Positions 609 through 48,475 of a stretch of 64,000 nucleotides of DNA are shown here, in pieces (within the stretch, counting starts at the first letter, position 1; each line of letters starts with the position of its first letter). Made by a program: the position numbers and the translations under genes. Source of the DNA: Octopus sinensis (Eukaryota). The notes beneath the pieces are model-generated. The model saw only the letters and a program-made list of their open reading frames with translations, was not told where the DNA came from and did no database searches. Where the stretch lies: the NCBI RefSeq assembly GCF_006345805.1, contig NC_042998.1, positions 135,594,001-135,658,000 of the forward strand, written 5' to 3'.

Positions 609-1625
609 TTAATAAAATGATTGGGTTTCTTCCTCAGAAAAGAGGAATTCTTTGGATTCTTCCATACAATAAATTGAGTCATCAGACAACTTCATTTTGC
701 TGTGAATCTCGTCAAGTTTCAAATGCAAAAAGGCCCGACACCATAACATATGAATAAGTTCAGAATTATCAATCCCCTCTATAAAAGTTAGAATCTTGTG
801 ATGAAATCGAGGATAAAGTGATTTTATCAACGGGAAAAACTGTTTTATCAAAATTTTTTTATGAACTTTTGACGTTAAAGGAACACTGCTAAGTTCACTG
901 AATATTTTTCCTCCTTGTCCTTGTATTACGATCTGCGGAGATATTTCCTCTGTTATTCTTTCATCGTCATCAGTGGATGTTTGGTCACCTTCAAGAGTCG
1001 AGAATAAATCTTCTCCCAGCAGATGGCGCTCATCTACAATCTCAACTGATTCGTTTATATTGACGAGACTGTTTTTTACTGCATATGGTTGTTTCCCGGA
1101 ATAAGCTATTATCTGAGAACGAATTTCATCAATGTGCATTGTGCGGCAGTCAGCGCATTGTAAGAGATGAAGAATAGCCGAGTTGTCCAAATTTGCCAGT
1201 TCATTTATAATAATATCGGCAATATCTGCACAGTGATGTTGTAGGACAACCAAAAGTCGTATTTTGAGTAACCTGTTCAAAGGTTGGCGTCCAGTGAGTA
1301 ATTGGTGTAGAACGTTATTAGGTTCCGAAAAGTCTTTACACATATCAATAACAATAAGAGCCTCTTTCATTCGAACATCAAAGAAGTAACGACAGTTTAA
1401 CATATGGAACAATTCAGAATAATGGAATGTAGATGCCATTACATAGATGATTTGTTTGGCTATTTCAGGATAGAGGCTTTTGATAACCGGGTACAACAGC
1501 TCACCGATTATAACCATTCTTTCCGCTGGGGAGGCCTTGATTAAGGAATTTATAAATTTACGCTTTGCGTTCATGGATTGTGAAATCGTATTCTGTGATC
1601 TTGTTTCAGATTTTATGGAAGACAT
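609..1625 (-). CDS. Tandem MLLE (PABC, poly(A)-binding protein C-terminal) domain protein, 338 aa, single coding exon
   Basis: Three segments align by eye to the PABPC1 MLLE ([61 protein letters not shown]): LIKASPAERMVIIGELLYPVIKSLYPEIAKQIIYVMASTFHYSELFHML..RMKEA; LLKIRLLVVLQHHCADIADIIINELANLDNSAILHLLQC..HIDEI; KKILIKQFFPLIKSLYPRFHHKILTFIEGIDNSELIHMLWC..KLDEI. There is also a fragment ERHLLGEDLFSTL. An in-frame TGA four codons upstream supports the ATG at 1625. Confidence 0.85.
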   Translation of the reverse strand: MSSIKSETRSQNTISQSMNAKRKFINSLIKASPAERMVIIGELLYPVIKSLYPEIAKQIIYVMASTFHYSELFHMLNCRYFFDVRMKEALIVIDMCKDFSEPNNVLHQLLTGRQPLNRLLKIRLLVVLQHHCADIADIIINELANLDNSAILHLLQCADCRTMHIDEIRSQIIAYSGKQPYAVKNSLVNINESVEIVDERHLLGEDLFSTLEGDQTSTDDDERITEEISPQIVIQGQGGKIFSELSSVPLTSKVHKKILIKQFFPLIKSLYPRFHHKILTFIEGIDNSELIHMLWCRAFLHLKLDEIHSKMKLSDDSIYCMEESKEFLFSEEETQSFY

Positions 1626-2395: not shown

Positions 2396-2506
2396 TATGT
2401 ATGTATGTATGTATGTATGTATGTATGTATGTATGTATGTATGTATGTATGTATGTATGTATGTATGTATGTATGTATGTATGTATGTATGTATGTATGT
2501 ATGTAT
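2396..2506. repeat. (TATG)n microsatellite
   Basis: Perfect tetranucleotide run. Confidence 0.99.
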
Positions 2507-2509
2507 AAA

Positions 2510-2605
2510 AGAGAGAGAGAGGGGCGAGAGAGAGAGAAGAGAGGGGGGCGAGAGAGGGAGAGAGAGAGAGGGCGAGAGAGAGAGAGAGAGGAGGAGAGGC
2601 AAGAG

Positions 2606-2636
<31 letters not shown>

Positions 2637-2682
2637 GAGGAGAGGCAAGAGAGAGGAGAGAGAGAGAGAGCAAGAGAGAGAG

Positions 2683-2733
<51 letters not shown>

Positions 2734-3267
2734 GCCAGAGAGAGAGAGAGGAGGAGAGAGAGGCAAGAGAGAGGAGAGAGGCAAGAGAGAGAGAGAGAGA
2801 GAGGCAAGAGATGAGAGAGAGGAGAGAGAGGCAAGAGAGAGAGAGGAGAGAGGCAGAGAGAGAGAGAGAGAGAGGCAAGAGGAGAGAGAGAGAGAGAGGC
2901 AAGAGGCAAGAGAGAGAGGCAAGAGAGAGAGAGAGGCAAGAGAGAGAGAGAGGCAAGAGAGAGAGAGAGGCAAGAGAGAGAGAGAGAGGCAAGAGAGAGA
3001 GAGGCAAGAGAGAGAGAGAGGCAAGAGAGAGAGAGGAGAGAGAGAGGGACAAAGAGAGAGAGAGGCAAGAGAGAGAGGCAAGAGAGAGAGGCAAGAGAGA
3101 GAGGCAAGAGAGAGAGAGGGGCAAAAGAGAGAGAGAGGGGCAAAAGAGAGAGAGAGGGGCAAAAGAGAGAGAGAGAGGGGCAAGAGAGAGAGAGAGAGGG
3201 GCAAGAGAGAGAGAGAGGGGCAAGAGAGAGAGAGAGGGGCAAGAGAGAGAGAGAGAGGGAGAGAGAA
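2510..3267. repeat. Compound polypurine array, (GA)n interrupted by GGCAA/GGA units
   Basis: ~760 bp of almost only G/A on the plus strand, with recurring unit GGCAA(GA)n. Confidence 0.97.
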
Positions 3268-6348: not shown

Positions 6349-6696
6349 CATTTCATAGAAGTCCGCCTATGGTGTAGCTATCGGCCGTTTTAGGTAATTG
6401 AATGATTTTAGAAAGGGTGTTCCATCAAATCTTACAAAGGTGAAATTTCGCAGCGACTAAGTTTGTACCTATGTTAGAAACCAATGCGTTTTACGTTACT
6501 ACAAAGACAACTATGGGTATAAAACAATATTCGACGAGCACTTATTTTATCGATTCTTGGACGGATTAAAGACTAAATCAATCTCAACGGGATTTGTTGA
6601 ACGCAGAATAAATGTATGCAACTAAATGTAAGGTATTGCCCGAAGCACTGACGATTGTTGTTAGATCTTCATGTTGTGCTCATCTGTCTTATATTC

Positions 6697-7036
6697 TTTT
6701 ACTCGTTTCAGTCATTTGACTTGCGGCCATGCTGGAGCACCGCCTTTAAGGGTTTTAGAAGAAATTGATCCCAGGACTTATTCTTTTATAAGCCTAATAC
6801 TTATTCTACCTGTCTATTACCGAACCGCTAAGTTTCGCGGACGTAAACACAACATCAGTTGTCAAGCGATGGGGGATGCGACAGACAGACAGACACACAC
6901 GGGCTTCTTTCAGTTTCCGTCTACCAAAACCACTCACAATGCTTTGGTCGGCCCGAGGCTACAGTGGAGACACTAAAAAAAGGTGCCATGCAGTAGGACG
7001 GAACATGGAACAATGGGATTAGGAAGCAAGCTTCTT
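6697..7036 (-). mobile_element. tRNA-derived SINE, family 2 (body ...TTGGGCAAGTGTCTT..., tail GTGCTCCAGCATGGCCGCAGTC..TGACTGAAAC)
   Basis: Reverse complement of a ~340-bp repeat also present at ~12455, 29270, 48140, 50190, 56000 and 63380. Confidence 0.8.
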
Positions 7037-19089: not shown

Positions 19090-19378
19090 GTGTGCGTCTA
19101 TATATGTGTGTCTGTATGTGTGTATGTATGTATGTATGTATATATGTATGTATGTATGTATATATGTATGTATATATGTATGTATGTGTGTATGTGTGTA
19201 TGTGTGTATGTGTCTGTGTGTATGTATGTATGTATGTGTATGTGTGTGTATGTATGTATGTGTGTGTATGTATGTATGTATGTATGTATGTGTATGTATG
19301 TATGTGTATGTATGTATATATGTATGTGTATGTATGTATATATGTATATATATGTATGTATATATGTATGTATATATG

Positions 19379-19414
<36 letters not shown>

Positions 19415-19558
19415 TGTATGTATGTATGTATGTATGTATGCATGTATGTATGTATGCATGTATGTGTATGTATGTATGCATGTATGTATGTATGCATGTA
19501 TGTGTATGCATGTATGTGTATGTATGTATGTATGTATGTGTATGTATGTATGTATGTA

Positions 19559-19591
<33 letters not shown>

Positions 19592-19636
19592 ATGTATATG
19601 TATGTATGTATATATATAAGTATATGTGTGTGTGTA
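19090..19636. repeat. (TATG/TG/TA)n compound microsatellite
   Basis: Direct reading; it is the source of the overlapping HTYI/MYVC ORFs. Confidence 0.98.
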
Positions 19637-27335: not shown

Positions 27336-28169
27336 TGATGGTGAACCTCTGTCAGATGGTGATCAGTTGCAATTCAGACCCGGCTGAACAGACCCGTGAT
27401 CAACGGTATTCCAGGTGTAACCAACACGCCTTTTTTAGGAGTATGTCAAACTAAATTATTCAGTGTCATTTAAGGGAGATTTGACTATTTTTAACAGGTA
27501 AGATGACCATATATATAACCCATCTAAGAAATTCTTATCTTTGACGTCCTAGATCTTTATAAATAAGCATTGTTTACAGGATCTGTATAAAGATTTCGAC
27601 TGGTCGGTTTTGAATCATAGATGGAAGACAATCTCGTATCAATTTGTATTTTGGGTACAATTTTAATTGAACCATCATTATTATTTTATCCTTCACTTAA
27701 CTATGTATTTTGCAGATGGTATCCCTGGGAAAATTTCCTATATCGTTACAGTAAAGATTGTCTGTTCATAGAAGTTAATGTTTGTGTCTTGAAGATATGT
27801 CTGGGATGCAAATAACTTTCGTAAAATTTGAAATAGTTTTTGTTCATAATTTCAATCAGATTGTATTTCTTTGTGAAATTTAATTAATCGTATTGTTAAA
27901 TCTAATTACTCGTATAATATTTCTTTGTTAAATTTAATTCGTCTGGCTGTTGTTTAGCCCCAGGTTGGCTCTTATTGAGCTTATCGAAAATCAACGGTAT
28001 ATTCCACTTACGGCAACTCGTTAGTTTTCCAGGCATCATATAGCTAGAACTACATTGGCAAATGTGTGTGTATGTCTCTTTTGAAACTGTAATTTAAGGG
28101 CGATTTGGCTGGTATTTCTAGCAGGTCGAGCGATCACGTTGACATTTTCTTGTATATAATCATGTATCT

Positions 28170-28848
28170 TTTATTTTTTAAATTTGTCATTCGACTGCGG
28201 CCATGCTGGGGTACCGCCTTAAAGAGTTTTTAACCGAACGAATCGACCTGGGTTTTTATTTTTTAAAACTTGGTGCTTATTCTGTCTATTTTGCCGAAAA
28301 GGTAATTTACAAAGACGTTTACAAACCAACACCGGTTGTCAAGCGTTGGTGGAGGTCAAACGCACGCACACTCTCATGTAAGAATATGAGGGGTTTAGTT
28401 TATTGGTGATCTAAACGAATAGGTACGCTGTGTAAGTACTTCAATTGGTCATCCGTTAGATTCCAAGTTCACAGCTGAGGCTGGAGCTAGGTTAGCTTGT
28501 ATATATTGGAGGAAAAGGACAACAAAAACCAAGGCAGGACGAGTATCTCAAGTCATTTAGAATATTTAGAATTTGAGGTAATTAATTAATTAGTTAATTA
28601 ATTACCTCAAATTCACCTTACTCTAAATATTCTAAATGACTTTAGATACTCGTCCTGTCTTGGTTTTTGTTGTCCTTTTTCATTCAATATATTTAATATG
28701 TATATAATGACGGGCTTCTTTGAGTTTCCGTTCACCAAATCCACTCGGATTTGGTGGACGGCTTTGTTCGGCCTGAAGCTATAGAAGCAGACACTTGCCC
28801 AAGTCACATAGTGGTTGGGGAGCAAACTTCTTACCACACAGCCACACC
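28170..28848 (-). mobile_element. Family-2 SINE split by a ~330-bp insertion
   Basis: 3' half at 28170..28370 and 5' half at 28700..28848, colinear with other copies. Confidence 0.7.
28501..28692. repeat. Long near-perfect inverted repeat (arms ~90-100 bp, ~4-nt loop)
   Basis: ATATATTGGAGGAAAAGGACAACAAAAACCAAGGCAGGACGAGTATCTCAAGTCATTTAGAATATTTAGAATTTGAGGTAATTAATTAA is mirrored by TTAATTAATTACCTCAAATTC(8-nt extra)CTAAATATTCTAAATGACTTTAGATACTCGTCCTGTCTTGGTTTTTGTTGTCCTTTTTCATTCAATATAT. Confidence 0.95.
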
Positions 28849-36267: not shown

Positions 36268-38778
36268 TCATCTGTATCTACAGGGAATAATTATTCGTCG
36301 TCCACTTTTTGTGGTTTTATTATTTTGTAGTGTTGAATTCTGTAGTTGTGCTGTTTTTGTTTTTTCATGCGTGTTTGTTGACTTTGGAAATATATTTTCA
36401 TAATCTAATTCTTCTGTTATGCGAACGTGTTCGTTTGTTTTAAGAATATGTTGTCTATTTCGTTTGACTGTATTACCTTCCTCTGTTATTACTAAGTATG
36501 AACGAGGTTGCTCTAGTTTTTTAATTATTTTGCCCCTTCTAAACCAATTGTTGTTAAACTTAATTCTAACCGTGTCGTGTGGTTTTAACTCTGGGAGTTC
36601 TGTTGTAATGTTTGATTTCTTCTTTTCGTGAGGCCTGATACCAATTTTGTCGTGTAATATGTTTGGGAGATTTGTTCGCAATGTTCTATTCATTATTTGA
36701 TTTGCAGGGGATGGTGCACCATTTTGTAATTTAGTCGTGCGTAATGCTAAGAGCGCTAACTGAGGTTCTTCGCCACTTTTGAATGCCTTTTTTAGCGTCT
36801 TTTTTATTGTCTGTATATTTCTCTCAACCATGCCATTCGCTTGATGATAATGCGGGCTTGTCTTCGTGTGATGAAAATGCCAATTTTTTGCAAATTTTTT
36901 GAATTCAGCCGAATTGAATTCTGGACCGTTGTCACTTACAACTGTTTGCGGAATTCCGAATTTAGCAAAAGTTTCTTTTAATTTTTTGATTACGGTTTTT
37001 GACTGGCAATCATTTATTTCGTGTAGATCAAAAAATCTTGTTGTATAGTCAATAATTGTGACATACGAATTTCCAGACAGGTGAAATACGTCTGTACCCA
37101 CTTTGGTCCATGGTGTAGTAGGTATTTCATGATTTATTAGTGGTTCGGCTGCTTGTTGATTTTTGTAGTCAATGCAGTATGAGCATGTGTTAATCATGTC
37201 TTTGATTTGAGCGTTAATGCCGGGCCAGTATATACATTCCTTCGCTCTCTCTATGCATTTTTCGATACCCATGTGTCCGGTATGTATTTCCTGTAGAGCT
37301 TCTCTACGTAATGACTTAGGTACAATTATTTTTGAACCTTTTAGAACGAGACCATTGACGATTGATATTTCATCACGAACGGATACGAATGGTTTGATGT
37401 TTATTGGTATTTTGTCTTTTGGGGGCCATTCTGTTCTTGTATATGTGACGAGTGTCTGTAGAAACGGGTCGTCTGCAGTGGCTTCTTTATACTCTTTTAA
37501 TTTAGTGTCGGTTATGGGGTAATTTTTTATTACTGCATGAATGTGCGATTTCATATCTTCGTCTGGTACTTCTGGAGTATTTTGCTCAAGGTATGCACGT
37601 GATAGGGTATCTGCAACAATTGATTCTTTACCAGGTATGTGGTTTAGGTCAAAATCATATCTTTGTAATGTTAGTAGAAATCTTTGGATTCTGGGGGGGC
37701 ATTTAGTGATCGATTTTTTGAATATTTGCTTCAACGGTTTATGGTCATTTTCGATTCTGAAATGAGTTCCGTATATAAACTGATGAAATTTCTTGCATGC
37801 GAAAACTATACTGAGAGCTTCGCTCTCTATCGGACAGTAGTTTTGTTCCGCTTGAGTTGTTGCACGAGATGCAAACGAAACAGGTAGCCATCTTTCGTTG
37901 TGTTTCTGCTCAAGTATCGCTCCGAGCCCATGCTTACTAGCATCTGTAGTTATTTTTATTGGTAGATCTGGATCATAAAATTGTAGCACTGGTTTTCTGG
38001 TAATCATTTCTTTTAGCTTTTTTATTGCTTCGATTTGTGGTTTGTCGAATGACCATAACGTGTCACTCTGTAGAAGCTGGCGCAATGGTGCTGTGACTTC
38101 GGAGTAATTAGATAAAAATTTACATAGGTAATTTGTCATACCTAGGAATCTTTGTAATTCTTTTTTACTTGTTGGCAGTGGCATGTGAATGATTGCTTGT
38201 ACCTTGGTTGGATCTTGTTTTATCCCTTCGCTGGTTAATATATGCCCAAGGTACTTGATTTGTGATTCATAGAAGATACACTTTGATTTATTTAACTTTA
38301 ATCCGTGCTTTCGGATTCGATCGAAAACTTGTTGTAGTCTATTTGTGTGTTCTTCTAAAGTGTTGGACCAGATTATGATGTCATCCTGTGAATTTCTTGC
38401 TCCTTCTATGCCCTCTATTATTTTTGAAATTCCTTTTTGGAAAACTTCACTGGCGCTGTGAATTCCAAAGGGTAGTCGTGTGAAGCGATACCTTCCAAAA
38501 GGTGTGTTGAACGTTAAAAGATGGGAGCTTTCTTCGTCAACTGGAATTTGCCAGTATCCATTAGATGCATCGAGTTTTGAAAAATATTTAGGGTTATGCA
38601 TTTGTGCAAAAATGTCCTCCGCTGTAGGGAGTTTGAAATGTTGCCTTTTTATGGCTTTGTTTAGATTCTTGGGGTCTAAACAGAGTCGGAGTTTTCCGTT
38701 GGCTTTTTCAACGATGACTAGGGAATTTACCCAGTCTGTAGGTTCACTAACAGGTTTTATGATATCTAATTCTGTCAT
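36268..38778 (-). CDS. pol: Pol: reverse transcriptase, RNase H and integrase (836-aa open portion)
   Basis: RT: KLDASNGYWQI, RLPFGI, SQDDII, YLGH. RNase H: TDASKHGLGA, NDHKPL, ADTLSR. IN: HTGHMG..C..C zinc finger, GTDVF, SDNGPEF, GMVER. Confidence 0.97.
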   Translation of the reverse strand: MTELDIIKPVSEPTDWVNSLVIVEKANGKLRLCLDPKNLNKAIKRQHFKLPTAEDIFAQMHNPKYFSKLDASNGYWQIPVDEESSHLLTFNTPFGRYRFTRLPFGIHSASEVFQKGISKIIEGIEGARNSQDDIIIWSNTLEEHTNRLQQVFDRIRKHGLKLNKSKCIFYESQIKYLGHILTSEGIKQDPTKVQAIIHMPLPTSKKELQRFLGMTNYLCKFLSNYSEVTAPLRQLLQSDTLWSFDKPQIEAIKKLKEMITRKPVLQFYDPDLPIKITTDASKHGLGAILEQKHNERWLPVSFASRATTQAEQNYCPIESEALSIVFACKKFHQFIYGTHFRIENDHKPLKQIFKKSITKCPPRIQRFLLTLQRYDFDLNHIPGKESIVADTLSRAYLEQNTPEVPDEDMKSHIHAVIKNYPITDTKLKEYKEATADDPFLQTLVTYTRTEWPPKDKIPINIKPFVSVRDEISIVNGLVLKGSKIIVPKSLRREALQEIHTGHMGIEKCIERAKECIYWPGINAQIKDMINTCSYCIDYKNQQAAEPLINHEIPTTPWTKVGTDVFHLSGNSYVTIIDYTTRFFDLHEINDCQSKTVIKKLKETFAKFGIPQTVVSDNGPEFNSAEFKKFAKNWHFHHTKTSPHYHQANGMVERNIQTIKKTLKKAFKSGEEPQLALLALRTTKLQNGAPSPANQIMNRTLRTNLPNILHDKIGIRPHEKKKSNITTELPELKPHDTVRIKFNNNWFRRGKIIKKLEQPRSYLVITEEGNTVKRNRQHILKTNEHVRITEELDYENIFPKSTNTHEKTKTAQLQNSTLQNNKTTKSGRRIIIPCRYR

Positions 38779-41999: not shown

Positions 42000-43555
42000 G
42001 CCAGCAAATTGACACACTGTCCTTGGAATTAAGGAGCGGCTCATGAATATGACAGATCCCCCCCCATAAAAAGCCTTTGTTCAAGACCAGGCATTCCATT
42101 CATTTCCCAGCTCAACGAGGCAAGCTCCGTTCTATGCTCGGGTCAAGGCAAACAACGCAACCCCCCAATATCAGCAGCGGGGTCCGACAGCATATGCTGG
42201 TTTACCCCCCACCACATCATGCTGGTTCCGTACCCCTTTGAGCAACATCAAATTCATTCATCCGTCCACAAACACTATCTAAGCTTTCTTACCTCTCATT
42301 CCAACACCTCTAACCACCAAAGCTTTCCTCATTCCATCCATCCATCCACACAAACCGAGGTCTGCCTCAGGTTCTGCTGCCTACCATTTCTGCCTTCATC
42401 ACCCTCCTTACCATCCGCTCCTCATCCATCCTCTCCATGTGGCCAAACCACTTCAACATTCGTCTACCCATTTTGGTTGTTAGTTTTTCTCATTCCTGCT
42501 CGCCTTCGCACCTCCTCATTCCTCATCCTATCCACTCGTGTCACACCAATCATAGCCTTCAGACATCTCAAACACATCTAGTCGCCTCCTTTCCGCCTCT
42601 CCTATTCCCCATGTCTCTGCACCGTATAACATTGTTGGCACAATCATGCCCTCATACACACCTCTTTTCGCTTTCATACTCAACATTTTATCTTTCAGCA
42701 TACATTTCACAACTCCAAGTATCTTACTCCCCTCCCTCACTCTGTATCCCCCTTTCCTCCGCTAACCTTCCATCTGCCGTCACATGTGATCCCAGATACT
42801 TAAAAACACTCATCTCCTCTAACATCTTACCATTTATACTCGTATCCATCCCTACCAGCCATGCCATCTCTCGAACATCTCGCCACCTTACTCTTAGCTA
42901 CATTCACTTTGTTTCCTCATCTCGCACACTCTTCCAAACTCTACCACCAGTTTCCTCAGTTGCTCTTCCGAATCCGCTACCAGTGCTGTATCATCAGCAA
43001 ACAACAACTGACTCACCTGTCATTTTTCTCCATTTTCTCCCACCATTTGGGCTCCCCTACCAAAAGTTGTAGCATTTACCTCTCTCACCACACCATCCAT
43101 ATATAAATTAAACAGCCACGGAGACATCACACAACCCTGTCTTAACCCCACCTTCACATCAAACCACTCATTTACTTTACCACCCATCCTAACCCACGCC
43201 CTACCTTCTCTATAAAAGCTCTGAATAGCTCTCAACAATCTACCATCTACTCCACACAACCGCAACACCTGCCACATTGCATCCCTATCCTATAGTCCTG
43301 AGCATGACTATAAACTACCCTAGGGCCCTGGTTTCAGGGTTTGGGGAGTGTGGAATCACTTTTTAGCCACTATTGTTCCTAGGTCTATTCTGCCCCAGAG
43401 TGGTAACACCTGTAAGGGTCTCAGCTATGGGTTAACTAGCAACCCCGCCCCCTGTGACTGGTGGGAGGATCGGTAGAATGCAGTCGTCATATTCCCTGCG
43501 TGGCGTAAGAGGCGACGAAAAGGGGCGGGTGCGAAGGGACAGGGAATCCACTCCT
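42000..43555 (-). mobile_element. Internally deleted RTE-clade LINE copy (5' head plus RT and 3' region)
   Basis: AMWQVLRLCGVDGRLLRAIQSFY, GLRQGCVMSPWLFNLYMDG, LLFADDTAL, IVPTMLYGAETW; the ~260-bp head at 43295..43555 is shared with 56906..57166. Confidence 0.9.
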
Positions 43556-45698
43556 AGTAATTTTATATTCCTAAAAAGACAAGAAAATGTTTTACAAATA
43601 TATAAAACAATCTTAAATGAAATTGAAAGAATCGCTGAATATTTTTATTACAACGAAAAAATTGATAGTGATGCTTAAGTTTTAGGTTTACTCTGTGTGA
43701 GTGTGTGTGTACATGGTTGAATAAATTTCATCCTATTGGACAACATCTTGAGCAGGTATTTACAAAAGATGAGTTGATCTAAGGCTTGGAAGTGAAATTG
43801 TGTAGACAAAAACTGGAAACCAGTTGATGGACTCTGTAAATCAGAAGAGGCCATCCTTATCATACTGTCTGCCAAAACGTTATGTTAAGTGTATGTACAG
43901 TGTCGTTTAAACACTCGGCCACTCGCAAGTCGATATAATGAACTAAGTACTTCCGTTGATTGAACAAATGTAATGCACATCGATCCATTTTGTTTCTTTA
44001 AATTTTATAACCTGTATATATGTATATAGGTGTCTCAGCGTATGTAAATAAACTTCCGTGGATAAGTAATTTTTCTACGCTTACAAGAAACAACTCTCAC
44101 AATCAATATTTATCCCACAAAGAATATGTAGCTTTTCTAATAAAAACAGAAAGCATCAGTTGGGTTTAAAGATATTTTCCTGTTTCTTTTTTTTTTCATC
44201 TCAAAACAGATGAGATAGAAAGATACATACACTGTCTTATCTATTTCTCTCTCGTTGTTATATTAATGACACTAACCAATGATAGCAAGATAAGTCTTTT
44301 GTCCTAAAACTGTTTTGTTCTTATTGATTCTTTCTAATGGAAACACTACATTAATACGAAAAGAAATACTGCGTATTAGATGGCCTTCGTTATAAAAGAA
44401 AATCGTTGACTCCGATAATATAATAGAGTAGCAGTACGCATGCGTCGAAGTGATGTTCTGTTTGAAATAAATTGCAGTAACATAAAAAAAAATTAAAGAT
44501 TTTCAAGTTCTTATACCCCAGCACCGAAGCATGGCTCATTCTTTTCTGTATAGGCTTTGGTGTATTTTTACAAAGTTTTCTGCGATGTGTTATAAACCAG
44601 TTTCTGGGGCTTTAGCTAACGATCGCTGTTATTATAATTAATTATTAATTAGTTCTTTGGTTCTCGTGTTGCAAGCCACATGGCGGAAGCATGGAACACT
44701 GAACTAGACACGTCACTATTTTTTCGTAAAACAACGACAGAATGATTTTCGATAGTCTTTCGTTTTCTTTTGTTGTTTAGCCTCTAGGTTATTTTCTGAT
44801 CCAGCTATTACCATTCAGATATTTTTTGTCGGACATAGCGTATCTAGGACTACAGTGTTCATTGTGTTTTTTTTTTTTAAGACATTGTGATTCGAGGACG
44901 ATTGGTTGCTTATTTCAGCACCTCGAGCGAGCGACTACAGATTTCCCCGTCGGTTTATATTTGTTGTTCAACCCTGATCAAAGGGATCTATGAACAAAAG
45001 CATTCCAACCGTGACCATTTCGTCTTTTTAGAGTTGTGAGATTACATTATCCAATGTCTCCTATGCTTATATTAAACGATATGTATTTTGAGTATGTCGG
45101 TTGCTATTTCTAGTCTATCGAGCGACTGCTCTCATTAATTTTCATATAATCTCCTTGGGTCAATAAAATAAGCACCAGTTAAGTATGGCGATTGTTCAAA
45201 CGTTATATTATTTGAATATAACTGTCTAATTAAAAACTATTTGGTGAGCTTTACTGGGCTCAAATAACAGTAGTTATAGACAAGCAGAAGGAGCCTTTAG
45301 GCAATCCTTTGACCTACGAGAAACTCACACCACTCCCCCCACAACGGCGGGAGTGGACAAGTTTGGTGTTATAATGGGATAGTCATCTTTGATCATAGGT
45401 GTACTCAATCAGAACTGACCTGGTGTTTGACAACAGCAGCAATTGTTGATGGCATGTAAGAGACACTTACATATGAAGTTTCTAAACACTATCCCCTGTC
45501 CTATCTGAAAAGTTGGACCTACATTACGTATTTTATAAACATTTTTTCTGTATATGCGATGCTGAAATTGGTTGGAGTGTATGTAACATACCCATGCTGC
45601 TTTTATGCCATCAAATGAGGTACTCTTATCTATAATGTAAAGGGCAGCGAGCTGGCAGAATCGTTAAGCACGTCGAAAATGATTTAGCGGCATTTTTA

Positions 45699-48139: not shown

Positions 48140-48475
48140 GACAACAACCACGTGGTTTCGAGATCAGTCCCACAACGCGGCACATTGGGCAAGTGTCTTT
48201 TACTATAGCCCGGTCCTACAAATGCCTTGTGAGTGAATTTGGGAAACGGAAACTGTGTTGAAGCCCGTCGCATTGGGTTTATATCCGTGTGTTATGTTTT
48301 TTGCTCTCCACCGCTTGACAACCGTTGTGCTTTTTTTCTTTGTTTACATTCATATAAATTAACGATTCGGCAAAAGATACTGATAGAATAATTAGCAAAA
48401 TTATAAGATAATTGATGGTCATGGTAGTGCTCCAGCATGGTTGTGGTCCAATGAGTGAAACGAATAAAAATAACA
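48140..48475 (+). mobile_element. Family-2 SINE
   Basis: GGCACATTGGGCAAGTGTCTTT..GGAAACTG..GAAGCCCGTCG..GTGCTCCAGCATGG. Confidence 0.75.

Follow-up and report, generated by a model that had tools for sequence, protein, structure and literature searches.

The window (the whole 64-kb stretch of Octopus sinensis DNA analyzed here) carries on its reverse strand a complete single-exon open reading frame (ORF) at positions 609 to 1625, whose 338-residue product is built from three diverged MLLE repeats, a disordered linker and two weakly conserved or variable tails. A TGA lies in frame 15 nt upstream of its ATG. No Pfam match to RRM, HECT, UBA or UBR was found in the 338-aa protein, tblastn with RRM-containing PABPs recovered nothing outside the ORF anywhere in the 64-kb window (including the 62 kb upstream), and no RRM exons were found by tblastn within ±10 kb of the ORF at three orthologous loci (L001 to L003). 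The neighborhood of the ORF is rich in transposable elements, and an Rfam scan of the window returned 0 matches. The features, with nucleotide positions in the window and residue positions in the protein, are as follows.

609..1625 (-): whole coding sequence in a single exon, 338 aa from the ATG to a stop codon at 609-611
1563..1625 (-): N-terminal tail, residues 1-21; weakly conserved in the alignment, pLDDT 35-41
1332..1562 (-): MLLE repeat 1, residues 22-98; five helices, helix 3 reading QIIYVMAS
1098..1331 (-): MLLE repeat 2, residues 99-176; more diverged than the other two, helix 3 reading IIINELAN, with an invariant CxDC
906..1097 (-): disordered linker, residues 177-240; pLDDT 23-32, acidic in octopods only
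996..1031 (-): invariant linker motif ERHLLGEDLFST, residues 199-210; invariant in seven sequences except at one position
855..938 (-): segment PQIVIQGQGGKIFSELSSVPLTSKVHKK, residues 230-257; a homolog of the linker that leads into the MLLE of PABPC1
690..905 (-): MLLE repeat 3, residues 241-312; closest to the canonical PABPC1 MLLE, helix 3 reading KILTFIEG
612..689 (-): C-terminal tail, residues 313-338; variable and disordered

The 5′ end of the Logan contig L004 was considered as a spliced 5′-UTR exon, which would have been evidence of transcription. It first matched one site ∼5 kb upstream in the window and in Octopus bimaculoides, but a more sensitive search recovered the same sequence in many copies and both orientations, as a SINE-like dispersed repeat, and the candidate exon was rejected. 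The gene-bearing Logan contigs end in repeats and are indistinguishable from genomic DNA. An additional 25-aa tail on the ortholog P0004 proved to be an artifact of a TGA read as Trp, the true ORF ending in ...SPTSLC.

Identification of the MLLE repeats

A scan of the whole protein against Pfam PF00658 matched the MLLE HMM over two stretches (53.8 bits, E = 1.9 × 10−14; cutoff, 27 bits), and orthologs scored between 35 and 57 bits. Taken alone, repeat 1 (residues 1-99) reached 30.9 bits, repeat 3 (residues 235-338) reached 19.9 bits, which is under the cutoff, and repeat 2 (residues 100-181) gave no Pfam match. A phmmer search of PDB aligned repeat 3 to PABPC1 at 35.3 bits. Self-BLAST of the protein detected no internal repeat; the copies are too diverged for pairwise BLAST, so that profile methods were needed. 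By hhalign, repeat 1 aligned to repeat 3 with a probability of 97.8%, and the family profile of repeat 2 aligned to repeat 3 with a probability of 93.9% (E = 1.5 × 10−7). Searched against PDB, the repeat 2 profile matched only PABP and HYD MLLE chains, in register (E ∼ 1 × 10−3), and a canonical gastropod MLLE reached repeat 2 by tblastn at E = 2 × 10−4.

Predicted structures were consistent with these assignments. The full-length AF2 model, made from an input alignment of five sequences, had a mean pLDDT of 57.6, and repeat 2 modeled alone had a pLDDT of 74. The top 34 PDB matches of the full-length model in Foldseek were all MLLE structures (target TM 0.72 to 0.85, with the exception of one NMR model at 0.49), as were the top 35 matches of the repeat 2 model (mostly query TM 0.62 to 0.73; rmsd 1.0 to 1.8 Å). 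DSSP assigned five helices per repeat on the predicted models, with helices predicted at residues 33-51, 56-66, 69-77 and 79-97 in repeat 1 and at 253-270, 275-283, 287-295 and 297-318 in repeat 3, and the modeled four- or five-helix bundles superposed on solved MLLE structures. Repeats 1 and 3 are therefore classed as MLLE by Pfam, and repeat 2 by profile-profile comparison and predicted fold.

The protein resembles PABPC most closely toward its C terminus. Repeat 3 keeps IDNSELIHML, and together with the upstream segment “PQIVIQGQGGKIFSELSSVPL” it aligns to the C terminus of human PABPC1 through the MLLE signature; the phmmer alignment of the region of residues 230-257, in which GQGG, IF and VPL are invariant across the family, runs to 1g9l_A residues 42-120 (E = 6 × 10−8). 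The pre-MLLE linker pattern V.VQGQ...L...L, the string IDNSEL.HML and the five-helix fold of each repeat are thus shared with PABPC1. In contrast, PABPC1 has four N-terminal RRMs and one MLLE, whereas the cephalopod protein has no RRMs and three MLLE copies, in which Ser599 of PABPC1 is replaced by Cys and both KITGMLLE and the Gly579 equivalent have been lost from every copy. The MLLE of UBR5/HYD/EDD has the same fold (Foldseek matches 1i2t and 3ntw), but the cephalopod protein lacks HECT, UBA and UBR and is nearer to the PABPC type in sequence. Pfam, profile comparison and predicted folds agree in this respect with the sequence-only reading, which had described a complete, stand-alone 338-aa protein of three diverged MLLE domains, with neither RRM nor HECT and with a PABPC-type C terminus as its ancestor.

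Peptide groove, cysteines and linker motif

Residues that contact PAM2 (PMC2854688) were mapped onto each repeat across species. The PAM2 Phe10 pocket comprises Gly579, Gly563, Phe567, Thr582 and Leu586, the Leu3 pocket comprises M584, I588, K606, E609 and A610, and Gly579 is required for the key PAM2 Phe to approach the backbone closely (PMC2854688). The helix 3 strings QIIYVMAS, IIINELAN and KILTFIEG, as first read, were correct and stand in register with KITGMLLE. This signature is gone from 3/3 repeats, only the L585 core position (M, L or I) being retained throughout. The Gly579 equivalent is lost in all species, replaced by K or N in repeat 1, D or E in repeat 2 and H, Q, R, E or L in repeat 3. 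Repeat 1 retains equivalents of G563, E564, F567 (as Y), P568, K606 (as R), E609, A610, V613 and L614, with Lys in place of Gly579. Its Phe10 and Leu3 pockets are partial, and most Phe10 pocket residues are absent from repeats 2 and 3: G563 is retained (as G or S) in repeat 1 only, and at the F567 position repeat 1 has Y or F and repeat 2 has L, while repeat 3 varies. Where repeat 1 keeps A610, the other two repeats have I or T. By these residues, no repeat qualifies as a canonical PAM2-binding MLLE, and PAM2 binding is doubtful because KITGMLLE and the Gly579 equivalent have been lost from every copy.

These substitutions weaken the earlier proposal of a decoy with changed PAM2 specificity. 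In that reading at least one repeat, of which repeat 1 is here the best candidate, would still bind PAM2 or variants of it in eRF3, PAIP, TOB, PAN3, GW182 or ataxin-2. The pockets retained in good part by repeat 1 make weak or variant PAM2 binding conceivable, and GW182 and PAM2L ligands occupy the helix 2-3 groove only (PMC11572963). Likewise, the plant stand-alone PABC protein MPC has been hypothesized to regulate translation (PMC4307191). However, a bulky or charged residue stands in place of Gly579 in all three repeats of all species, T582, G583, M584, L586 and E587 are changed too, and MLLE1 and MLLE2 of the fungal protein Rrm4, with the same loss of Gly, bind neither PAM2 nor PAM2L (PMC9249222). 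We consider PAM2 binding of this kind rather unlikely, and give a similarly low chance to its proposed consequence, the titration of factors off PABPC with altered deadenylation or translation. With the Gly579 equivalent and KITGMLLE lost in all repeats, sequence and analogy make non-canonical peptide docking, as in the accessory MLLE1 and MLLE2 of Rrm4, more likely than a PAM2 decoy.

Further conserved elements lie outside the groove. The Cys noticed just after HML/HLL in each repeat (C78, C157 and C296) is invariant in 7/7 family sequences and sits at the position of human S599, where canonical MLLE has Ser; C160 is likewise invariant and completes the CxDC of repeat 2. The four cysteines are likely to be additional functional elements and could form a metal or redox site. 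The linker had been described as acidic, which holds in octopods and fails in decapods. Within it, ERHLLGEDLF (residues 199-208) belongs to the most conserved stretch (ERHLLG.DLFST, invariant across the family) and lies 82 residues past the helix 2 motif of repeat 2, or one repeat period (helix 2 motif spacing along the protein, 81/82/57 aa). The string thus exists as reported, but its suggested ancestry as a fragment of a fourth MLLE fared less well. By hhalign it aligned with the beginning of repeat 1 in the expected register, but at a probability of 0.6% (E = 0.09); no match to repeat 3 was obtained, and its profile gave only chance matches against PDB (CTR9 and Rad32). Homology of the motif to an MLLE N terminus has no statistical support; period and register are the basis for regarding it as what may be left of helix 1-2 in a fourth unit that decayed. 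Today it is a candidate short linear motif and a likely functional element in its own right, and it could be a ligand for the protein itself or for a partner.

Such conservation is also what speaks for a compact, self-regulated module, in which the four Cys would bind metal or form disulfides that lock the bundles while ERHLLGxDLFST docks in cis on a groove. We hold this to be very unlikely. All four cysteines are invariant in about seven octopod and decapod sequences, three of them at the position where canonical MLLE has Ser, the motif is invariant inside an otherwise variable, disordered linker, and intramolecular binding of a PAM2-like sequence by the MLLE of UBR5 is mentioned in PMC11572963. 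Against it, the support consists of conservation, the linker is not confidently docked in the AF2 model (pLDDT 23 to 32), and a regular-expression search found no PAM2 or PAM2L motif in the family proteins.

Conservation across coleoid cephalopods

Members of the family were found in O. bimaculoides (LOC106878547), a third octopod, Argonauta hians and two decapod lineages including Acanthosepion pharaonis, with products of 327 to 344 aa. When 1.84 billion representative proteins were searched exhaustively, only two representatives of the family were returned, and none outside coleoids. Database records of orthologs already exist under the names “uncharacterized protein” or “PABC domain-containing protein”; the literature search returned no paper naming LOC106878547, its accessions or its sequencing runs, and no relevant paper tying MLLE to cephalopods. 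The ORF is uninterrupted at the window locus and at five orthologous loci (L001, L002, L003, L004 and L008), giving an intronless CDS in 6/6 cases, and all length differences among them are in frame. The start Met is conserved, with in-frame stops closely upstream in three lineages. The window locus is syntenic and colinear with that of O. bimaculoides, whereas conservation against Argonauta and against a decapod is confined to the ORF.

dN/dS was 0.069 between decapods, ∼0.18 between Octopus and Argonauta and 0.33 to 0.51 among Octopus species, and neutrality was rejected in every pairwise test (P = 0.012 down to 5 × 10−43). Among close Octopus species dN/dS was only moderately below 1, and in the closest species pair it was ∼1 in repeat 2 and the linker, where substitutions are few. 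The ORF has been kept open, as had been supposed at first reading, clearly under purifying selection, and represents a real, conserved, coleoid-specific protein-coding gene with a single coding exon. The MLLE HMM matches, the six intact CDSs, dN/dS below 1 and the lack of RRM exons in the 62 kb upstream each run counter to an outcome that the sequence-only reading had named as refuting it. A nonfunctional relic or miscalled ORF (a decaying open retrocopy, or one exon belonging to a larger, conventional PABP gene) would fit the lack of introns, the transposable elements and the near-neutral values in the closest pair, but it is extremely improbable given six intact orthologous ORFs across the octopod-decapod split, the rejection of neutrality throughout, conservation of the ORF alone, a conserved start with stops just 5′ of it, and no RRM exons nearby.

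Related architectures and proposed origin

MLLE is regarded as a docking domain that occurs once each in PABPC and UBR5. The earlier statement that no family with the present architecture had been described was too strong, and a multi-MLLE architecture without RRMs is not unique to the cephalopod family. Rrm4 of Ustilago maydis is a three-MLLE platform on flexible linkers, whose MLLE1 and MLLE2 are accessory, lack the key Gly and are so strongly diverged that they were found only through iterative modeling (PMC9249222); MLLE cores set specificity through several distinct pockets (PMC11572963). Three tandem MLLE on flexible linkers are likewise present in the cephalopod protein, and Foldseek links its repeat 2 to Rrm4 MLLE2 (7pze). 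However, Rrm4 is fungal and has three N-terminal RRMs, whereas RNA-binding domains are absent from the cephalopod protein, and the seven-helix MLLE3 of Rrm4 keeps the Gly and binds PAM2L, whereas 0/3 cephalopod repeats keep it. The resemblance is best taken as functional analogy with independent origins, and not as membership of one family. In plants, PMC4307191 describes Arabidopsis MPC (MATERNALLY EXPRESSED PAB C-TERMINAL; Tiwari et al. 2008, cited therein) as a stand-alone PABC protein. On that account MPC shares with the cephalopod protein a PABP C-terminal domain without RRMs and derivation from a PABP gene, but it carries only one PABC domain and is no ortholog of the cephalopod protein.

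Databases also hold many uncharacterized RRM-less proteins with 2 to 7 canonical MLLE, which come from further molluscs, from plants and from a crinoid. Among them are Octopus vulgaris CAI9723533 (7 MLLE), Babylonia XP_076446257, Plakobranchus GFO13914, Haliotis XP_071109053 and XP_046545996, and the crinoid Anneissia XP_033124296. Like the window protein they consist of tandem units, in O. vulgaris as a single uninterrupted ORF in which the unit includes the pre-MLLE linker. Their units are young, near-identical (88 to 92% DNA identity in O. vulgaris) and lineage-specific, keep KITGMLLE and score ∼60 to 70 bits each, and some of these proteins may in part be gene-model artifacts. In contrast, the window family is ancient and has orthologs across the coleoids, and its binding helix has degenerated. 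Derivation of the family from the seven-MLLE array of O. vulgaris was rejected, since canonical IDNSEL.HML is retained in the window family whereas the array reads LDEAELLPLI there. Judging from the tandem MLLE arrays that arose independently in other molluscs, in a crinoid and in plants, new genes appear to have come repeatedly from the 3′ end of PABPC.

The interpretation that we favor, with moderate confidence, is a coleoid-specific triple-MLLE gene derived from a PABPC-type C-terminal unit and encoding a flexible platform with several docking sites for short linear motifs distinct from canonical PAM2. A unit of pre-MLLE linker plus MLLE would have been copied without introns and tandemly amplified, probably to four units of ∼82 aa, before the octopod-decapod split, after which the third of the four would have decayed into the linker motif. 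The MLLE fold would have been retained while the canonical PAM2 groove was rebuilt in each repeat, and the protein would bridge or sequester partners, plausibly in mRNP or PABP-associated complexes. A bolder version, which we think quite unlikely, would make it the first animal MLLE platform: an RNA-binding-free coleoid adaptor with three re-specified grooves that read a short-linear-motif code of their own, the fourth-unit relic as a ligand in cis or trans and a four-Cys inter-domain metal or redox switch, organizing mRNP regulation, for instance where neurons or germ cells localize or store mRNAs.

A multi-MLLE, RRM-less protein that octopods and decapods have both kept would mean that MLLE platforms evolved in animals too and that the MLLE fold can be re-specified away from PAM2. 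Its three diverged grooves would offer a natural set for working out MLLE specificity. Cephalopods are known for unusual RNA biology, and the gene would be a lineage-specific candidate regulator among them.

Retrocopying of a PABPC 3′ end followed by internal multiplication is a plausible route to the gene. The coding sequence is intronless, as that of a retrogene should be, and relics of a poly(A) tract or of target-site duplications would not be expected to survive from before the octopod-decapod split. A living example of such an origin is found in O. vulgaris, where intronless ORFs are composed of 273-bp tandem units of PABPC linker plus MLLE.

Identity, conservation and distribution of the triple-MLLE gene

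The 338-amino-acid (aa) open reading frame (ORF) runs complete from ATG to stop (609..1625 of the window, minus strand), with an in-frame TGA 15 nt 5' of its ATG. Scanning the protein with PF00658 (MLLE), as the sequence-only reading had proposed, gave 53.8 bits (E = 1.9e-14, two stretches), and Pfam found neither RRM nor HECT, nor anything else notable beyond MLLE. Matches of phmmer against PDB sequences were almost all PABP MLLE chains; the top alignment (1g9l, E = 6e-8; query 229-309, reading 'spqiviqgqggkifselssvpl...idnselihml') began in the pre-MLLE linker of PABPC1 and extended across the domain. Scanned by themselves, repeats 1 and 3 scored 30.9 and 19.9 bits, respectively, and repeat 2 had no Pfam match, so the middle repeat needed separate tests. 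A repeat 2 profile (seven family sequences) aligned with that of repeat 3 (hhalign probability 93.9%, E = 1.5e-7) and, among PDB sequences, recruited solely MLLE chains (PABPC1, PABPC3, wheat PABP and HYD), in register; a canonical gastropod MLLE also matched repeat 2 by tblastn (E = 2e-4). Modelled alone (AlphaFold2), repeat 2 was predicted to form five helices (pLDDT 74), and its best 35 Foldseek PDB matches were MLLE structures (mostly query TM 0.62-0.73, rmsd 1.0-1.8 Å), among them MLLE2 of Ustilago maydis Rrm4 (7pze). The predicted full-length model has three bundles, each of five helices, with residues 177-244 as a disordered linker; its best 34 PDB matches were all MLLE. The earlier observation of three diverged MLLE domains without RRM or HECT is thus confirmed, by Pfam for repeats 1 and 3 and by hhalign and AlphaFold2/Foldseek for repeat 2. 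The helix-3 strings quoted with it and the Cys following HML/HLL were borne out by the family alignment and residue map, and the fragment ERHLLGEDLF is present in the alignment; the linker is acidic in octopods, but not beyond them.

Splicing of the region into an RRM-type PABP had been named as a possible refutation; RRM-like exons were absent from the upstream 62 kb and from the 10-kb flanks of the gene at three orthologous loci. One uninterrupted ORF with the start Met kept was found in six of six loci examined, with in-frame stops just 5' of it in the window, Argonauta and the decapod locus L002. The window is colinear with the O. bimaculoides locus; against Argonauta or the decapod, nucleotide similarity is limited to the ORF, beginning in Argonauta 10 nt before the ATG. 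Searching 5.8 billion clustered proteins yielded five clusters, whose sources included a third octopod and a second decapod lineage in addition to the following.

Family members from cluster look-up
Octopus bimaculoides, XP_014783276, 'uncharacterized protein LOC106878547'
Argonauta hians, GAB1602481
Acanthosepion (Sepia) pharaonis, CAE1171667, 'PABC domain-containing protein'

Searched exhaustively with an HMMER profile, 1.84 billion representative proteins contained just two representatives of the family (E = 1e-164 or better), the remaining matches being canonical MLLE proteins. On the public data, the family is therefore confined to coleoid cephalopods and single-copy; tblastn detected no paralog within the 64-kb window.

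Pairwise dN/dS (Nei-Gojobori)
Two decapods: 0.069
Octopus versus Argonauta: about 0.18, with dS saturating
Among three Octopus-group species: 0.33-0.51

Neutrality was rejected in every pair (binomial test, P = 0.012 down to 5e-43). In the closest pair the ratio was near 1 in repeat 2 and the linker, but very few changes underlie it. Constraint on CDS 609-1625 was lineage dependent (0.33-0.51 in the Octopus group versus 0.07 between the two decapods). The ORF is very probably a real, selected, stand-alone triple-MLLE gene.

Repeat anatomy and origin

Helix-2 motifs by starting residue
41: GELLYP
122: IRLLVV
204: GEDLFS
261: KQFFPL

Successive helix-2 motifs lie 81, 82 and 57 aa apart, which places the fourth fragment (ERHLLGEDLF, residues 199-208) exactly one unit past repeat 2. 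A probable reading is that it remains from a third unit that decayed after an ancestral array of four had formed; the best hhalign placement aligned 'pDERH-LLGxDLFSTLEG' with 'sPAERmvIIGELLYPvIKS', where repeat 1 starts, but not significantly (probability 0.6%, E = 0.09). ERHLLG.DLFST is identical from octopus to cuttlefish inside a disordered, otherwise variable linker, an invariance that marks it as a candidate functional short linear motif.

Two derived features foreign to canonical MLLE recur in each of the three repeats: a Cys at the position of human Ser599 and loss of Gly579. Duplication of an already-changed unit would fit this pattern; convergence could conceivably have produced it as well. 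Origin by retroposition is plausible because the CDS is intronless and retains the PABPC pre-MLLE linker. On another chromosome of Octopus vulgaris (OX597818.1, locus L011), two intronless ORFs of 331 and 593 aa (L011 109-1087 and 4934-6731) consist of tandem 273-bp repeats, each unit being a PABPC pre-MLLE linker plus canonical MLLE; one array holds 6.6 copies at 92% identity, the other 3.6 copies at 88%. These arrays resemble a minisatellite that codes for MLLE domains and are a present-day parallel to multiplication of a linker-plus-MLLE unit; P0165, a sister gene model, has 1754 aa. Descent of the window family from the array is ruled out, as the family keeps canonical 'IDNSEL.HML' versus the array's 'LDEAELLPLI'.

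PAM2 groove and candidate mechanism

Residues contacting PAM2 in human PABPC1 MLLE were mapped onto the repeats: the Phe10 pocket (G563, E564, F567, T582, L586 and the carbonyl of invariant Gly579), the Leu3 pocket (M584, L585, I588, K606, E609, A610), further contacts (V613, L614, H617) and polar contacts (K580, Q560, E587) (PMC2854688).

Residues at human PABPC1 positions in the family
Gly579: repeat 1, K/N; repeat 2, D/E; repeat 3, H/Q/R/E/L
G563: repeat 1, G (octopods) or S (decapods); repeat 2, K; repeat 3, I/L
F567: repeat 1, Y/F; repeat 2, L; repeat 3, variable

Core residues L585, L593, H595, M596, L597 and E609 are conserved. Rrm4 MLLE1 and MLLE2 carry Ser and Arg in place of the Gly; neither domain binds PAM2 or PAM2L, and both have an accessory role in a flexible platform of three MLLE domains (PMC9249222); MLLE cores set specificity through different grooves (PMC11572963). 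Given the altered pocket residues and these precedents, the best-supported mechanism, tentative and somewhat less than evenly likely, is that of a multivalent adaptor that does not bind RNA and in which three re-specified bundles would dock non-canonical short motifs. A selected gene working in this manner is, taken together, the best explanation and a reasonably probable one. The PAM2 decoy function suggested earlier is a weaker alternative that would essentially concern repeat 1 alone: this repeat retains more pocket residues than the other two, but the Gly579 equivalent is replaced in all three repeats, and the Gly-lacking Rrm4 domains argue against binding. The earlier interpretation is partly supported as a whole. 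Within the docking adaptor, a self-ligand or a metal/redox element may further be provided by the linker motif and by four cysteines (C78, C157, C160, C296), all of them invariant; the family contains no PAM2 or PAM2L pattern.

Related proteins and surrounding sequence

The MLLE domain itself is already known, and the family shares fold and ancestry with that of PABPC1. Rrm4, described in 2022 as the first multi-MLLE protein (PMC9249222), is analogous in its three-MLLE architecture but is fungal and carries RRMs; Arabidopsis MPC is likewise a stand-alone PABC protein (PMC4307191). The profile search also turned up many uncharacterised RRM-less proteins with two to seven canonical MLLE domains (Octopus vulgaris, Babylonia, Plakobranchus, Haliotis, Nucella, the crinoid Anneissia, the plants Kingdonia and Urochloa, and other eukaryotic assemblies), some of which may be gene-model artefacts. 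The claim that no described family has this architecture is right only in part; neither these proteins nor the window family were found in the searchable literature. The window family is set apart by an age preceding the octopod-decapod split, strict orthology, purifying selection and a systematically rebuilt binding helix. Among related models outside the window, P0018-P0041 and P0061 (the gastropods Haliotis, Plakobranchus and Babylonia, the crinoid Anneissia, the grass Urochloa and other eukaryotes) have two to seven canonical MLLE and no RRM, and one from Kingdonia has four MLLE plus an F-box; those combining MLLE with a GPCR (Nucella) or with MIF4G and RRMs (Mytilus) may be fused.

Other features of the window
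36268-38778, minus strand: 836-aa ORF with reverse transcriptase, RNase H and integrase
2396-3266: (TATG)n, then ~750 bp of degenerate (AG)n, 0.8 kb upstream of the MLLE gene
19099-19623: second (TATG)n array
6691-6750, 28169-28220, 48429-48469 and others, both orientations: SINE-like dispersed repeat ('GGCGGTGCTCCAGCATGGCCGC..GTCAAATGACTGAAAC')

By domain content, 36268-38778 is pol from an LTR retrotransposon of Ty3/gypsy type, unrelated to the MLLE gene. Short Logan contigs bearing the MLLE gene terminate in dispersed repeats and may be genomic DNA rather than transcripts; the 5' end of ortholog-bearing contigs is the SINE-like repeat. A 211-aa ORF at 42437-43072 (+) had no Pfam match, and at 42001-44000 GC content is locally raised (0.448) while GC skew is strongly negative (-0.34). 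Both simple-repeat tracts generate spurious long ORFs in several frames, and that at 2396-3266 falls in the 2-4 kb bin of peak GC skew.
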